A stretch of DNA of 63,819 bases, counting the filler, from Pelomyxa schiedti (lineage: Eukaryota; Protista; Evosea), in NCBI GenBank assembly GCA_020536535.1. It is 9 parts of 9 records of this genome, joined end to end, with 100 filler letters (N's around TTAATTAATTAA, not from the genome) between each part and the next. Parts side by side here need not be neighbours in the genome. Positions count along the whole stretch, not along the records: positions 48,047 to 55,651 come from JAHLWZ010001350.1; 8 more parts are not named here. The stretch is one strand, 5' to 3'. The notes beneath the pieces are model-generated. The model made no database searches, was not told where the DNA came from, and saw only the letters and a program-made list of their open reading frames with translations. A program made the translations under genes and the position numbers. Below are positions 48,047-55,651 of this stretch, one piece after another. Position 1 is the first letter of the stretch. Every line of letters starts with the position of its first letter.

Positions 48047-48146
<100 letters not shown>

Positions 48147-48385
48147 ATACTTACAATACACACATGCACTCTTGCCCTCCTCCTCTTCCTCTTCCTCCTC
48201 CATGTCTTCTTCTTCTTCCCCACACAAAAGTGGTGCACTTCGTTTGCACACTTTTGTGTGGTTTCCTCTTTTCCCTTACTTTTCCTTGTGGACTCGTGTT
48301 TATATGTAAATACAGTACCCCAATCATTTCCGAGATAAACTTCGTGGAACTAACAAGTTTTTTTTCTAGTAGTGTTGGGGCTGAA

Positions 48386-51300
48386 TCAGAGGCGGTCCGG
48401 CAGCAGTGCGGCTTTGAACTCTTCAAGGGAAACCAGCCCGTCGTGGTTTGTGTCCATGGATTCATGAAGCTTTTGGTTTAGTGAGTGCGGAATCAGTGTT
48501 GCCGGTACATAACATACCCGTTTTATCTGATCATCACTCAGGGGTATATCCAGCAGAATGGATAGTGCCTTAAGGCCGGCCTTCAGTTCATCAGCGGTGA
48601 TGGTTCCGGAACAATCCACATCCATTTGCCGGAACAGCCGGTTCACCTGAGAAACAAAGGTATGATTAAGTTTAGGAAGAAAAGTGGTGGAATCTACATA
48701 GACTTTCTTTTTGCACATCTCCCTTGCTATGCTTCCTCTGATTTGACGATAAAACGCCCTCTCGTTCTCTTTCTCGTAACAGGCAAGCTGCAACTGCCTC
48801 AACGCGTGCTCAAAGTCATCAAAAGATATTGTTGGTGATGCCGCGGAAGAATTTTTGGTCATCATAGACTTGAGCAGAACCGCGGCGTCAGATTCTGTGT
48901 GCTGAGCCCATTTTGTGGGTGCGTGGGACTTGAGGAACTGGAAGAATTCTGGTGGCGAAATAAGGCCATCAGAGTCCGAGTCGATAGAACTGAACACCAA
49001 GTGCAGCTTTGCAAGGTGGGAACTGCAGCCAGTTCCCGGTGATGCCAGGCTTGATGACGGATCAGCCGGGATGGAAGTGGATTCCACAATAGAAAATAAA
49101 AGCAGTTTCTGCTCATTGCTCCATTTTGCCTTTTGGGGGAGGTTAATTTCGTTCAATCATTGTTTGTTGGGTACCTTTTTAACTGCTTCAAAGTTTTTAT
49201 GCAACCAGTCGTTGAACTCGTTGTAGTCTACGCAAAGACAGTGTAAGGATAACAACACGTGACTCTTTCAATGGCTTTTAACGGCATCATACCAAGTTTT
49301 CCATCTTTATTTTTATCAACAACCAAGAACAGATCACATATCTTCATTTTTTTTGCGTTAGTCTGCCATGTAAATATTGTAAAACTACAACCTGCTCGTT
49401 GCTCAACTTGAGATCAAATGAACTGAGGGTTTGTAGAAATTCAGCATATGATATTTGCCTATTTCCATCAGTGTCAAAGAACGCGAATGCTTGTAGGATG
49501 TAAGTAGTAAGTCCGGTTTTTATCTGACTGCTATTACCTTCTTCGATGCTTCCGATATTTTCCAGCAGGAACTGATTTATTCTTTCTTCAACAAGATCGG
49601 CCCATGTGTCCCATAAAATGCTGTGTAATAATATAAATGTATTTTAAAAAAAAAGGTTGGTTGGTGTGTATAAATAAGAAGAACGAATTTCATGATATCA
49701 TGTGGCTATTCTTTTGGGAGAAGGGAACTTACTCTTGTGGAATAATGTTGTGCTGGTCAAGGAATTCCATGTAGGCAATCTTCTCATCGGAGTTTGGCAC
49801 AGCAAAATACTTCCAAAGGTGTTCCCATTGAAGATGATCACTTATTACCTTTTTCATTACTAAGAAGAAGAAGGAGACTCAGAAAAAGAAAAAGAAAAAA
49901 AATTGGAGAATAAATAATACCTTCTATAAACTCGGGAATGGAAATTTGCCCCTTTTGGGACCAATCAATACTTGCAAATTCCATGGCGAGCACATTTCTG
50001 TTGATAAAGATCCTCTGTGCACTTTGCGCTTAGGTTCGCGTTCGCAAAAAAAAAACGGTCTGTGGGTACCTTTCTTAACTTCTCTATGGTGATCTGTTGG
50101 CAGTTCACTGCTGTGGACTGGAAAACCATGGCATAAAACTTGGGAAAGTGAACTGGCGGGAAAGAATTGGAAAACAAGCTATGAAGATACCGGATGTATT
50201 GTAGGGATAGGGGGTTTCCCTGAGTTGATCGCTTCACTGAACTCATCATCAGAAAATATGCCAACAGCACCTTTGTTATCAGAACACCCGTTGTAGTTCG
50301 ATGCAGAAAAGAGCGTGAGAACTTGGCCTTGGTGGTGCCACTGAAATCCTTCATCTGGCTATTGTGACACAGTAAGAAACCAAGCACAAAAGAGAAATAT
50401 ACTTCACTGGTTCGTGTGACCGAATGATCAATGACAGGTTGTTTGTTCTGAGGAATGTTTCTGTTACATCTGGTCCCCACTACCATCCCCAATGTGATGA
50501 ACATGAAGAAAGATTATTATTTCAATGAGATAGATGATGAAGAGTGAAGGTCTACTTACAAGCACAGCAACTTGCCGGGGGCTTGGTTGAGTTCCAATAA
50601 CTTGTGGAAATTAGTTTTACACATGAAGAAGAGGAAAAAAACTGTCATCTGCTGGGTCACTCCAGAGAGCACACTCGATGAGATGCAATTCACGTGCCAG
50701 TTGGGGATTCGTTTTGGAAAAAGGTCTCAATTGTACAGGTTCAACGTTGTGAGGAAGTAAACTAAGTTCGTGAAGGGTAACTTCAGCAAAGTTACTCAAC
50801 CCTGGTGATCGTTAGCCTCGAGCTCAATTTGAGTTCACTGGCATACCGCCATGCAACACAAGCACTTTGTCATTGATCACGGTGAAGAGTGGGAGAGACT
50901 TGAAAGACTCAGAGATGACATCGAATATTTCCGGAGAGTATTTCTTGGTTACTTCTTTCCCAAAAGAATACGATTCGCAAATATAACGCTGTTATTTAGA
51001 GTTAAAAGGAACCAAAGGGCTATGTGGGTAGTCGTCACTTGTTCATGATTTCCTCTGTTGAGAAATGTGGCACTTGGATTGCACATAACCAAAGCATACA
51101 AAATGAGTAACACCTCCACCCCTTGAGGTCCTCGATCAATGAAGTCACCATTGAACAAGTAAATATTGTTGGTGGATGGTAAACCTTCTGACGTGAAAAA
51201 CCCACCAGTTATGGGGGACTTGAATACCAAAAGCTTGGAAGATTGTTACAAGGTCAGTGAGTTGTCCATGTATATCCCCCACAACCACCAACTTCCCGCC

Positions 51301-52153
51301 CTGTCATAGTTGAGTGCCAAGGAGGAAAAAGGTGTCAGAAGACTTTAGGAATGGTGATGTTCATAAGTGATGTCCAGTTCGTTGTTGCATGTTGCATGAA
51401 GGAAGCCAATAACCTCTCCACATAAGCCATGTGTAACAACACATTTGACTGGAAGGAAGAAATAAGAGACATCACAGATTTCACTGTAGACAGTGAAAAA
51501 AAAAAGTACAGGTGGGAGTTGCACACTATTGATTTTTTGTGGCAGGTGAGGTCCTTTATAGGATGCATCTGTAACGAGAATATCAGCTTTTCCTGAGAAT
51601 CCATCAGCGTGTAAACAGACAAATTTAAGAAGAAACCTAAAACAAAGGACTTTTTCATGAGTGCATCCAAGTGATTCGCACAGGAGGTCCTGTGTCTCAT
51701 CTCCAGACTGGAAAGAGCTCCAGGCCCAGTAACATCTGGGGACACACTTTCAACTGAAGAAGCACTGGAACTTGAACTTGTAAAAGAACTAGAAGGCGTG
51801 GAAGAAGACGACGACGTTGAAGAAGTCGAAGAGGCCAAGCTTCCAGACAAAACGAAGCTCGACTTGGAAGAATCGAGGGTTCCCCCTTTGAGTGAGAGAG
51901 GGTGAACACCCCCACTTACCGCTGACGAAACCAATTCATTATACAGCTGTTCTTCCCTCACAAGGTCCTGGTCTTGTTAATTTTCATGTCAGATACTAAG
52001 AAATATACATCCAAAAAAAAAAAAACCAGGTGGATCAAGAACCTTCAAGTAGTTCCAAAACACTGAAAGCCTCCTTGAAAAACCTTGAATCGCCACCACT
52101 TTCGAATGAATTGCCTTCGTTTCCTTTTGGTTTTTTTTGGCAAAAAGACACAT
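48386..52153 (-). CDS. PPEF: PPP-family Ser/Thr phosphatase with IQ-like N-terminus and multiple C-terminal EF-hands (PPEF/RdgC-like), many introns
   Basis: VAIQGFSRR (IQ-like); VVGDIHGQ, NGDFIDRG, RGNHE, LWSDP, SPRQVAVL|WGPDVT..IIRSHE; EF-hands DSDSDGLISPPEF, DVDCSGTITADEL, DTNHDGLVSLEEF. Confidence 0.85.
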
Positions 52154-52307
52154 GTCTATGCACATAGAGACACCGACGAAACAACACCAAAGTTAACATA
52201 GATTGTTTTTTTTCCTTTACCCGCAGTTACGGCGTTGCAAGCAGGAAAGGTCGTCATCAAAATTTTTTTGTTTTTTTCGTGTGTGAAAATTTCGCGAAGA
52301 CGATAAA

Positions 52308-54843
52308 TCAAGGAAGTCTCATCCAGGAGAGGCCCAATCGGTCCAGCTTTTGTGGGGTTGGGAGGCCTGAGGTCAAGTCCCAGCCCATTGCCTCGAAGTG
52401 TGAGTCCAGTGCCTGCTTCAGATTCACAACTTGTCCAATTCCTATTGGTGCTGTATTCAGGATGTGTTGAGGGAATTGCTATATGAACAACCTTTGCCGT
52501 CAATAGCGGGCTGAGAAAGGAACCTGGATGGAAGCGTGTCATCCTTCCTGTCAAATCCAAACCGGGCCATCAGCATCCGTTCCATATCTAGTATGTGAGA
52601 ATCAGCGGAATTATTCCAAGGGAATAGAATGTGTTGGACAAACTTATAACGCGTTCGGCTGCAAGCAATAGGTCATCCTTGGATACTGTCACACCGGTTG
52701 CTGCAGATAGGCATTTGGCCCAAGTGCTGGCACTGACGGCGAGAGTGATCGATGCAAATAGGCAGACTCCAAGCAAATTTGTGGCCATGGAGAGTTCTTG
52801 AAGAGGTTTAATCCAACCTTTGTTTCCGTCCTCCAATGGGTCAACATTCCCGGTTATGTTGAGCTCTGCCGAGCGGTAACCGTAACTGTGTAGTTGTTAT
52901 TCCATTAGTACAAGCCGATTTACATACGCATCAATTGTCGAAGCATAAGGACGAAGGTGATCAGCTCCCCTCGAGGATGTGGCGTGAGCAACGGCTTCAG
53001 CTTTGCTTGCCACAACTCCGCATGATGCCATCTCAAGCCCCTTTACATGCATTGCGGCATCAGCTGCAGTAGAACCTTGTATTCAAATGAGGGATATAAA
53101 CCTGAGAGTTGAACTTACCAAGCCTTGCAGCCGCAGCGGCAACGCCGAGGCCAAGTAACTTGCCCAATTCAGTCTGTTGTGCTCCAATTTCGTTAACCAG
53201 CTCAATGGCCATTTCTCCATCACCCCATCTGAGTTCTCTCCCACATATTTCTCTGGTGAGGATACCCGATTCGTACCACTCGATAGCGGTAGCAATGCAC
53301 TGACCACATGAGATGGTATCCAGGCCGAGTTCATTGCATCTATTTGATAGTGCTTTTAACAAAGGCGTTGATTCAGGAGTAGAAACCTATAACTTGCTTT
53401 GGCGATGGCGTTGAGATCCGTAATTCCGCATTTACTGCCAAATGCTCCGAGTGTTTCATACTCAGGACCGCCTCCCGAGGAACCTGCACCACCGGTGAGA
53501 AAGTTGAGTCACTATGAAAGGAAGAACCTGCCCAGGTCCCATTTTTAATTGTTGTGTGGCGGCCACATGCAATTGGACAACCCATGCATGGCGCTGGTCT
53601 CACTTCAAGGTCTCTGTGATAAGGGTCCTCCATTTTGAGTTAATTTAATTTGTTGTAAAACAAATAGTACAAAACCTGGAAAAGGGTTGCAGAACTCTCT
53701 GGAAAAGTTGTGTTTTGCCAATTCTTCGTTGGGAGCAACCCAAGTGCGCAAATACCATCATAAAATCCGGGAGTTCCATGAGGTTTCTGCAAAGAATTTT
53801 TCTTAGTATTTCAGCAACTCTAGGACACACACCAGAACATCTCTCACAAATCCTTCATTGAACAATTCTTTTCTTGCCTCTTCTGCTGCCTGAAACATAT
53901 AAGTGTGTAAAGGGTATTTTGTGACACATACTACTGCCATTGCCGAAGGGTCGGCAACTGTAATTTGACTGGTTCCAATCACTGCGACGGCCTTGAGGTT
54001 TTTTCCTCCCATCAAAGCGCCAGCACCTCCTCTCCCAGCAGCCCTTTCCGCGTCGACTGTGATGGATGCATACGCCACCATTTTTTCGCCGGCTGGTCCG
54101 CATGAGGCAATGGACATTCGGCCGTGCCTTCCCTTGATAATGGCCTCAGCAGCGGGAACTTCTTTTCCCCCTGTTTGAAAAATTATTATAAACGCAGTAC
54201 AGGGAAGAGTGAACCCACATAGGTCTGATGCATCTTCAATTGTGCATGTATCATTGTTTATAACCACGTAGACAGGCGACTCAGCCCTACCAGTGAATGC
54301 AACCATATCCCATCCAGCTCGTTTGAGTTGCCACGCAAAAGAACCCCCAACATTGGATGCACCAAGTGTGTGGGTTGTGGGCGACCTGAATATCACAACA
54401 AGCCTTCCACTTGTGGGAGTTGAAGTGCCTATATATGATGAATATTTCTATAAGGAATAATACAGTCAGGTATCAGGTTAAATATACCAACCTGTAAGAG
54501 GTCCCGTAACAAACAACAAGGGCTGCCGCGGATCATGAGGGGCCCAAGTTGGATCGAGGTTTGCACCCTCACACAGCCACCTGACACCAAGTCCCTCCCC
54601 ACCAATGAAGTCTCTGCTCCATTCCACTGGTAACACCTGTTAATACTATTAAACCAAAAGTTTGGTCACTTTTGTACATTTAATTAAAAACAAAAAAAAC
54701 GGAGCCTCACTCACATGAACCGACACGACTCTCGTAGTCAGATCAATCAAAAGAAGTCGATTCCCATGTCCACCAGTGGTACTAGTTGTCGGTGTTACAG
54801 TAGAACTTGTGGGAGACGGCGCCGACGTGTCGGTTTGCGACAT
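52308..54843 (-). CDS. aor: Aldehyde:ferredoxin oxidoreductase family protein (AOR, W/Mo-bis-pterin + 4Fe-4S) with about 10 spliceosomal introns
   Basis: GGHGNRLLLIDLT..|..FIGGEGLG..GPLTG..SGR..SPTT..SNVGG..LKRAGWD..CGPAGE..AAGRGGAGALMGGKNLKAV..CMGCPIAC..GPEYETLGAFG..NELGLDTIS..HVKGLE..RGADH..LGVCLF..DDTLPSRF; first intron 54637-54714 (GTGAGT..AACAG). Confidence 0.93.
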
Positions 54844-55149
54844 TCACACAATCCAAAAAAAAGATTCAACTCCCTTCTTTGTCTTCTCAAGACACAAAGC
54901 CATCACTCACCGTACTAATCTGAGGGTGTGGTTCCCTCTCCTGCACACCCTGAGAAAGGTAGAGTAAAGGTTCTCATGTGGTTCCGTGGTTTGTTTGTGT
55001 AATTTACTGGTCAATTTTGCTGCTACACACCTTTCACCTGCAACCGCTTGTGAGAATCATCTCAGATTCAATAATCATATCAATATGATAATCATATTAT
55101 TCCGGTATTATTATGATTATTATATATCAATAATCATAATAATACCGGA

Positions 55150-55651
55150 ATGATGGACGCAACGGCGAGCGACGGGAGGATACCAGAGGGCTCATCGTGC
55201 ACATCTCTCAGGGTCCAGGATCAATTCGCGGCCATTTTGATGTGCGCACATCCCCGCTGCTGCGGCATGCACCGCGCACAAGACCTGTCGTCGGATCCGT
55301 GGGAAGAAGCGATCCGTAGGCCGCCACCAGAGGTGCCACAATGTGATTCATTGGGTGCCATCAGGGTGCTGTGGGACTGGCTCTCCCACGCCCCGACGAG
55401 GTGGTTCTTCCTCATGTCTTCTGCATACAGCCGTGGCATTGGAATTGCGTTTGGAGTGTCACCACTCATGGGCGCCGTCACGAGCGACGTGCGTTTCTTG
55501 CAGCCGCCCCCCAAAGTAAGCTTCGTTTGCGCCAACCCGTTCTGTGTGTTGTCGAAGGAAATTGTCGAGGATGATGGCTACTTTTTTGACAAGTTCAGCG
55601 TCACCAGCGTCGCGACTTCGGAGGTTCTGACATCTCTCAAGGTATACACTG
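55150..55651 (+). CDS. Expanded family 1 member, 5' part (cut by contig end)
   Basis: VQDQFAAILMCAHPRCCG..VLWDWL..IAFGVSPLMGAV. Confidence 0.75.

Follow-up and report, generated by a model that had tools for sequence, protein, structure and literature searches.

Here, we describe a gene for an aldehyde:ferredoxin oxidoreductase (AOR) in a 63,819-nt stretch of DNA (the window, along which all positions are counted) from the amoeba Pelomyxa schiedti (assembly GCA_020536535.1). The gene lies on the part of the window at positions 48,047 to 55,651 (JAHLWZ010001350.1), and it is nuclear and eukaryotic, because it carries 12 spliceosomal-type introns, has a host-like GC content at third codon positions (GC3), and is linked to a multi-exon gene for a PPEF-type Ser/Thr phosphatase. 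By its sequence, the gene is prokaryotic in origin, since the protein that it encodes nests inside a clade of bacterial and archaeal AORs. The features of this protein make it likely that the amoeba has a functional, probably cytosolic, laterally acquired and domesticated AOR sensu stricto that is coupled to ferredoxin. With more doubt than confidence, we further propose that this is a working tungsten (W)- or molybdenum (Mo)-bis-pyranopterin enzyme in the P. schiedti cytosol, which would make it the first eukaryotic AOR-family enzyme and possibly the first eukaryotic tungstoenzyme.

Gene structure

The reading-frame pieces of the AOR gene are spread over all three minus-strand frames between 54843 and 52308. 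We joined them into exons through frame-keeping GT...AG pairs and then checked each junction against 75 aligned prokaryotic homologues. The resulting model is as follows, with the equivalent residues of Pyrococcus furiosus AOR (Pf) numbered as in the printed 1AOR alignment.

52308 to 54843, minus strand: AOR-family gene, start to stop codon; 13 exons, 12 introns, 642-aa product
54715 to 54843, minus strand: exon 1, Ser/Thr/Pro-rich extension (residues 1-24, 54843-54772) and start of AFOR_N
54492 to 54636, minus strand: exon 2, AFOR_N, profile positions 19-63
54219 to 54428, minus strand: exon 3, AFOR_N; TSGR (54414-54394), equivalent to Pf Arg76, and GASNVGG (54363-54343), equivalent to Pf Asn93
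53932 to 54170, minus strand: exon 4, end of AFOR_N; AERAAGRGG (54051-54025), equivalent to Pf Arg182; donor refined to GTATGT
53833 to 53889, minus strand: exon 5, interdomain linker
53676 to 53786, minus strand: exon 6, start of AFOR_C
53528 to 53627, minus strand: exon 7, CMGCPIAC (53588-53565) with three [4Fe-4S] cysteines, equivalent to Pf Cys288, Cys291 and Cys295
53387 to 53483, minus strand: exon 8, GPEYE (53469-53455), equivalent to Pf Tyr312 and catalytic Glu313
53119 to 53339, minus strand: exon 9, first pterin motif NELGLDTIS (53335-53309), equivalent to Pf residues 338-346
52928 to 53075, minus strand: exon 10, GADHLRPY (52968-52945), with the equivalent of catalytic Pf His448
52644 to 52885, minus strand: exon 11, second pterin motif and fourth cluster cysteine, TNLLGVCLF (52782-52756), equivalent to Pf residues 489-494
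52492 to 52587, minus strand: exon 12, AFOR_C, profile positions 318-347
52308 to 52441, minus strand: exon 13, ending in the TGA stop and beginning after the downstream of two candidate acceptors

The ATG begins at 54843 and the last base of the TGA stop is at 52308, exactly the limits that an initial annotation of this DNA had given for an AOR-family coding sequence. That annotation had also proposed canonical introns, about 10 in number; the GT-AG borders hold for 12 of 12, and the count was slightly low. The introns are 42-78 nt long (mean 51), fall in phases 0, 1 and 2, and are AT-richer than the coding sequence (GC 0.23-0.48 vs 0.51). By comparison with homologues, their removal restores both the frame and collinearity: all 13 exons are in frame with no internal stop, and residues 25-641 of the spliced model align to residues 3-617 of prokaryotic AORs (617-621 aa) with no indels at the junctions. 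An in-frame TGA lies immediately 5′ of the ATG, and the 22- to 24-residue extension therefore belongs to exon 1, barring an unseen 5′ exon.

At several junctions, an alternative splice was considered and rejected. For intron 4, the donor GTAGTA leaves an indel exactly at the junction, which is removed by using GTATGT, 3 nt downstream. For intron 8, the alternative splice produces a junction indel in Pfam coordinates, and the splice that was kept reads ...AKASYRCNELG.... For intron 12, the upstream AG (52452-52451) introduces a 3-residue insertion relative to all homologues, and the AG 9 nt downstream (52443-52442) fits. The upstream AG would add Ala-Pro-Ile and may be a site of alternative splicing.

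Family membership and active-site residues

The Pfam profiles AFOR_N (PF02730) and AFOR_C (PF01314) match the exon pieces collinearly, with E-values down to 7e-24, far beyond chance. The matches cover profile positions 19-63, 63-132 and 134-199 of AFOR_N and positions 23-51, 60-88, 92-118, 118-195, 197-241, 246-318, 318-347 and 351-385 of AFOR_C. In a scan of 1.84 billion cluster representatives, a 199-aa in-frame stretch of the gene matched AOR-family proteins only. The CMGCPIAC, NELGLDTIS and GVCLF motifs singled out in the initial annotation are all present (residues 311-318, 365-373 and within 521-529, respectively). All four cluster cysteines are kept, C311, C314 and C318 in CMGCPIAC and C527 in GVCLF corresponding to Pf Cys288, Cys291, Cys295 and Cys494, as are the equivalents of Pf Arg76, Asn93, Arg182, Tyr312, Glu313, Asp343 and His448. 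The motifs that contact pterin, phosphate and Mg are likewise complete (NELGLDT, NLLGVCL, TSGR, GASNVGG and ERAAGRGG). Two aspartates of the P. furiosus enzyme are asparagines in the amoeba protein (D338N and D489N in Pf numbering); both substitutions are common to the entire closest bacterial subfamily, and Asn at position 338 is also found in the solved 9MQX chain.

Across 75 prokaryotic relatives, 87 columns are invariant, and the amoeba AOR retains 85 of them; of the 102 columns conserved at ≥90%, it retains 90. In a leave-one-out test, its share of retained invariant columns (97.7%) is higher than that of two true family members from prokaryotes. By this measure, the gene looks like one under purifying selection and not in decay, and with every cofactor ligand and catalytic residue in place, the protein looks functional.

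Within the family, the protein groups with AOR sensu stricto above FOR, WOR5 and BamB, both in the bit scores of its own exons and in a proxy search with its closest prokaryotic relative. The exon bits summed against solved structures are highest for 9MQX (163), 9G7J (144), 1AOR (142) and 8C0Z (136) and lower for WOR83 (120), FOR (115), WOR5 (103) and BamB (78). The closest prokaryotic protein, P0211, ranks the structures in a comparable way, with E-values of 1e-132 for 9MQX, 7e-128 for 1AOR, 8e-120 for 9G7J and 5e-112 for 8C0Z and weaker matches to FOR (1e-87), WOR5 (4e-67) and BamB (9e-62). No GAPOR or WOR4 chain was among the PDB matches, and the protein is set apart from those two groups by its likeness to characterised AORs. 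It is this closest likeness, together with the equivalents of Tyr312, Glu313 and His448, by which we class it as an AOR sensu stricto.

Eukaryotic context of the gene

The genes on either side of the AOR gene, on the same piece, are as follows.

48386 to 52165, minus strand: PPEF-type Ser/Thr phosphatase gene, multi-exon, with IQ motif, Metallophos core and EF-hands
55150 to 55651, plus strand: GC-rich open reading frame (ORF; GC 0.54-0.61) with its ATG at 55150, running off the edge of the piece; no Pfam match

The PPEF architecture is known only from eukaryotes. The PPEF-type gene lies downstream of the AOR gene on the same strand, its calcineurin-like phosphoesterase core is split across several frames, and its IQ-type motif was identified by eye and not by profile scan. 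The initial annotation had placed a PPEF-like gene 154 nt away on the same contig; the neighbour is there, and this distance holds from its second ATG (52153), the first ATG (52165) being only 142 nt from the AOR stop. One unambiguous 40-nt GT-AG intron of the PPEF-type gene, between ...IFQAF and EGLPSTNNIYLFNGDF..., matches the AOR introns in style. The two genes also agree in composition, with a GC3 of 0.45 for the AOR gene and 0.49-0.53 for two PPEF exons; among seven prokaryotic relatives that were checked, six have a GC3 of 0.71-0.91, and the seventh, from a Thermoplasmata metagenome-assembled genome (MAG; L024), has 0.37. The GC content of the piece is 44.8%; the P. schiedti genome as a whole has a GC content of 46.5%, genes with 7.4 introns on average and GT-AG borders at 98% of these introns (PMC8887013). 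On its other side, the AOR gene is linked to host DNA by the ORF at 55150-55651, for which 5.8 billion proteins yielded two relatives only, the P. schiedti hypothetical proteins Pelo_18921 (78%) and Pelo_19216 (91%). These matches, together with the genome statistics, point to P. schiedti or a very close relative as the source, whereas Mastigamoeba balamuthi, with 60.7% GC, was rejected.

Several other features of this piece were observed. The region 55060-55651 consists of an AT-rich stretch with a 26-nt near-perfect hairpin (arms 55096-55121 and 55129-55154, 7-nt loop) followed by the GC-rich ORF, and Pelo_18921 and Pelo_19216 sit on tiny contigs of 1.2-1.7 kb, which suggests that hairpin and ORF form a species-specific multi-copy, possibly mobile, element. 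A (TG)n microsatellite occupies the left edge of the piece (48047-48140), and no Rfam family was found between 48047 and 55651. The N-terminal region of the PPEF-like product (51338-51961, minus strand) contains a long Ser-rich low-complexity run, and such runs, in this product and in the AOR extension, may be a general trait of the proteins of this genome.

Prokaryotic origin

The amoeba AOR is 55-61% identical to full-length prokaryotic AORs, with P0164 the best at 61.3%. No closer or eukaryote-like relative emerged from the representative library, the fragment-length proteins, the GTDB genomes or the JGI metagenomes, all of them searched with queries other than the spliced protein, so that annotated eukaryotic orthologues may have been missed. 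Specifically, the best match among GTDB species genomes was 60%. In JGI metagenomes scanned with exon 11, identity over full length did not exceed 61%, every match being an uninterrupted prokaryotic gene, and two C-terminal metagenome fragments reach 69% over about 130 aa. The search of fragment-length proteins with the 199-aa in-frame read-through piece returned prokaryotic fragments only, at ≤54%, with no self match and no intron-bearing relative. These searches were ranked by likeness to bacterial queries or made with exact peptides, and a somewhat closer prokaryote elsewhere is possible.

The lateral acquisition put forward in the initial annotation is borne out by both trees, in which the amoeba AOR nests in a bacterial/archaeal clade. 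In the IQ-TREE analysis (LG+C20, quick search), which comprised 75 organism-labelled prokaryotic sequences and 8 distant AORs as outgroup, the amoeba protein belongs to clades of 61 rows (SH-aLRT 99) and 53 rows (97), in the smaller of which it shares an unresolved node with sequences of the Desulfomonilaceae type and with a group of Chloroflexota, Thermoplasmatota and Synergistota. In the FastTree analysis of 255 rows, it falls inside a 218-row clade (support 100) with deltaproteobacterial MAGs and Coriobacteriia as its sister (support 93). A bacterial donor is the most likely on these trees, from which the donor lineage is not nameable, and the transfer is evidently not recent.

At five prokaryotic loci that we scanned, the adjoining genes are unrelated, with no AorA (polyferredoxin), AorC (flavoprotein) or MoaD-like partner. 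Since the relatives are stand-alone genes, transfer of a single gene could suffice. At two Coriobacteriia loci (L029 and L034), the AOR lies in a stop-to-stop frame of ~1030 codons, of which ~410 are upstream of the AOR domain; the long frame could represent a gene fusion or simply take in an upstream gene that shares it.

Proposed function, localization and cofactor supply

We propose that the gene was acquired by this anaerobic archamoeba from an anaerobic prokaryote and has remained intact in its nucleus. After the transfer, 12 short spliceosomal introns would have been inserted, the base composition would have come to resemble that of the host, and a short N-terminal extension rich in Ser and Thr would have been added. 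The 24 N-terminal residues include many Ser, Thr and Pro, one Asp and no Arg or Lys, the first basic residue being R29, in keeping with the earlier description of an S/T-rich extension that lacks Arg. The C-terminus, ...SWMRLP, does not resemble a type 1 peroxisomal targeting signal (PTS1), and "aldehyde ferredoxin" is not to be found in the published supplementary lists of proteins predicted to be organellar. Because of this extension without basic residues, the C-terminus and the absence from those tables, the protein is probably cytosolic.

The product would be a stand-alone AOR whose single [4Fe-4S] cluster relays electrons between the metal-bis-pyranopterin centre and ferredoxin. As for the P. 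furiosus and Clostridium autoethanogenum enzymes, a soluble ferredoxin is the likely redox partner, because the loci scanned in the relatives lack genes for partner subunits. According to the metabolic reconstruction of P. schiedti, the cytosol houses PFOR, PNO, ATP synthesis with acetate as product and five "long" [FeFe]-hydrogenases. There, the AOR would interconvert aldehydes and carboxylic acids in connection with the ferredoxin pool that PFOR and the [FeFe]-hydrogenases share. In one direction, aldehyde oxidation would reduce ferredoxin and yield H2, pulled forward by the methanogenic symbionts. In the other, acetate or other acids would be reduced to aldehydes as a sink for reduced ferredoxin, as may be compared with C. 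autoethanogenum, whose AOR reduces acetate to acetaldehyde with ferredoxin (PMC12727526).

Within the AOR family, only the YdhV clade prefers Mo; YdhV and the W enzyme BamB are without the second-shell residues typical of aldehyde-oxidising members, and all characterised clades that keep second-shell residues of the Glu313/His448 type use W (PMC12096430). As the amoeba AOR keeps the second-shell residues that the YdhV clade lacks, we infer that W is a better guess than Mo. The annotation of P. schiedti already credits it with the use of pterin cofactors, with bacterial-type items among the genes: the host gene table lists FdhF (Pelo_6878), four XDH, a molybdenum cofactor (Moco) sulfurase (Pelo_8692) and a Moco guanylyltransferase (Pelo_18822) (PMC10579272, supplementary file 3). 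These annotations and the conserved ligand residues of the AOR are indirect hints, and no more than that, of a bound bis-pyranopterin. The amoeba may thus possess more bacterial-type pterin enzymes than have been discussed. In its endosymbiont Ca. Syntrophus pelomyxae, aor is present as two "putative pseudogene" fragments (CSYNP_03194/03195), and tupA, tupB, moaA, moeA and mogA are retained and expressed (PMC10579272, supplementary file 5). An aor pseudogene in the symbiont and an AOR gene in the host make a complementarity between the two partners possible.

Alternative explanations

Several points weigh against an active, cofactor-loaded AOR in the cytosol of the amoeba. The splice junctions derive from homology and not from transcripts, and the localization call comes from the non-basic extension and a C-terminus unlike PTS1. 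At two positions, a residue invariant in the family has been replaced (R417 by Q and N572 by M in the order family, amoeba), and the terminal branch of the amoeba AOR is long (0.76 vs a median of 0.10), given which there may have been some drift or a shift in function. We know of no eukaryote that assembles a bis-pyranopterin cofactor. The host gene table, which is a curated subset of the proteome, contains no AOR, no EC 1.2.7.5 and no pterin-synthesis gene (MoaA, MoaC, MPT synthase, MoeA/MogA) (PMC10579272, supplementary file 3). Papers on Pelomyxa and Mastigamoeba make no mention of an AOR, and the gene is missing from the Pelomyxa metabolic reconstruction. The absence from the published metabolic tables, the long branch and the change of 12 near-invariant positions besides the two invariant ones would suit a gene that is real and bacterial-derived but non-functional, either unexpressed or the decaying relic of an old transfer. 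We regard such a relic as improbable, in that one old enough to have acquired 12 introns and 40% divergence would not remain intact without selection, whereas all 13 exons are in frame without a stop, all 12 introns are GT-AG, every ligand and catalytic residue is kept, and invariant columns are retained to an extent also seen among genuine members from prokaryotes. Still less credible, to the point that we give it almost no weight, is that the gene is not amoeba DNA but comes from a prokaryotic symbiont or prey or from a chimera in the assembly. Pelomyxa does host bacterial and archaeal endosymbionts, among them Ca. Syntrophus pelomyxae with its aor fragments, and the assembly was made from single-cell amplified DNA. 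However, no prokaryotic gene has 12 AT-richer GT...AG interruptions of 42-78 nt whose removal restores collinearity, and the best prokaryotic identity found is 61%. The GC3 and intron style shared with the eukaryotic neighbour ~150 nt away make contamination or a chimera untenable, in agreement with the initial annotation, which had excluded a symbiont contaminant.

If the AOR is functional, it may nevertheless be other than a tungsten enzyme, using a Mo-bis-pterin like YdhV of E. coli, or may act on a narrower or different range of substrates. Eukaryotic Moco pathways insert Mo, and the host is annotated with XDH and Moco sulfurase; one clade of the family does prefer Mo, the metal is not readable from sequence, and the long branch could mean adaptation to a new cofactor supply. 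We take this to be unlikely, though worth serious consideration, as the amoeba AOR groups with AOR sensu stricto and not with YdhV or BamB, it keeps Glu313 and His448, which are absent in the Mo-preferring YdhV clade and in its BamB (W) relatives, and all characterised clades of the AOR sensu stricto type use W (PMC12096430). The protein might also be imported into a hydrogenosome-like organelle or an anaerobic peroxisome by way of a non-canonical signal, given that prokaryotic homologues do not have the 22- to 24-residue extension and that archamoebae have divergent targeting signals, the difficulty of predicting which has been discussed (PMC8887013). Import is doubtful, and we think it quite unlikely: an extension with one Asp and no Arg or Lys is unlike a matrix presequence, the C-terminus is not PTS1-like, the protein's name is missing from the tables of predicted organellar proteins, and the extension may be a trait of the genome, as the neighbouring gene product also has Ser-rich low-complexity runs.

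Significance

Eukaryotes are described as having only the SO, XO and MOSC families, which are single-pterin enzymes (2018 comparative-genomics paper; PMC12096430), and AOR and WOR, like the use of W as a whole, are treated as confined to Bacteria and Archaea (2018 comparative-genomics paper; 2025 review, PMC12096430). The initial annotation, which had described AOR-family enzymes as those of anaerobic archaea and bacteria, is supported on this point, both of these sources describing bacterial and archaeal members only. Our full-text literature search found no report of a eukaryotic AOR, using the space-separated phrase, "tungsten" and "molybd", since the colon spelling "aldehyde:ferredoxin" is not matchable. 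The protein has probably been deposited already as a predicted P. schiedti protein. Its sequence is that of an ordinary AOR; what is new is the domain of life of the host and what this implies for cofactor biology. An intact, domesticated AOR gene in the nucleus of an amoeba extends the family to the third domain and raises the question of how a eukaryotic cell obtains a metal-bis-pyranopterin cofactor, and with which metal. If the enzyme works as proposed, a eukaryote would make the bis-pterin cofactor itself, possibly helped by further genes taken up from bacteria (the annotated Moco guanylyltransferase and FdhF are examples), or, alternatively, would obtain the cofactor or the handling of tungstate from its Syntrophus and methanogen endosymbionts. 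The enzyme would also add a ferredoxin-linked aldehyde/acid step, missing from the published map, to an obligately syntrophic consortium of amoeba, bacterium and methanogen. If it is active, W (or Mo) becomes a candidate trace-element requirement for the culture of these hard-to-grow amoebae.

Comparison with known systems

The closest subfamily to the amoeba AOR consists of stand-alone AORs from Anaerolineae, Synergistota, Coriobacteriia, Desulfobacterota and Thermoplasmata (e.g., Thermanaerothrix daxensis L074, Thermovirga lienii P0151, P0164 and P0211). With these, the amoeba protein shares 55-61% full-length identity, the order of domains, the cysteine ligands, pterin motifs that begin with N, its length once the extension is subtracted, and the lack of adjoining partner genes. 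It differs from them in its 12 introns, a GC3 of 0.45, the N-terminal extension, a much longer branch and its eukaryotic context. The founding tungsto-bis-pterin AOR, that of P. furiosus (1AOR), has the same AFOR_N and AFOR_C domains and conserved ligands and is matched directly by the exons. It is a distant relative, however, with aspartates at positions 338 and 489 where the amoeba has asparagines, and it comes from a hyperthermophilic archaeon, whereas the host of the amoeba AOR is a mesophilic eukaryote. The C. autoethanogenum enzyme (9G7J; PMC12727526), which is mesophilic and ferredoxin-linked, is like the amoeba protein an AOR sensu stricto and is among its best-scoring structures. It is a precedent for an AOR that turns acids into aldehydes to drain off reduced ferredoxin, although it is bacterial and its dependence on W is established by experiment.

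Among the best structural matches are also the catalytic subunits of AorABC from Aromatoleum aromaticum (8C0Z) and of a gut-bacterial WOR complex (9MQX; PMC12318220). Both complexes work with co-encoded polyferredoxin and flavoprotein subunits, of which none adjoins the amoeba gene or those of the relatives scanned.

PFOR, [FeFe]-hydrogenase, PFL and similar enzymes of anaerobic protists were acquired laterally. The pattern seen in the AOR gene resembles these cases in Archamoebae and other anaerobic protists, in that an O2-sensitive bacterial enzyme has been furnished with introns and would operate on cytosolic ferredoxin. Unlike them, the AOR family needs a metal-bis-pyranopterin, a cofactor that has not been described in any eukaryote.

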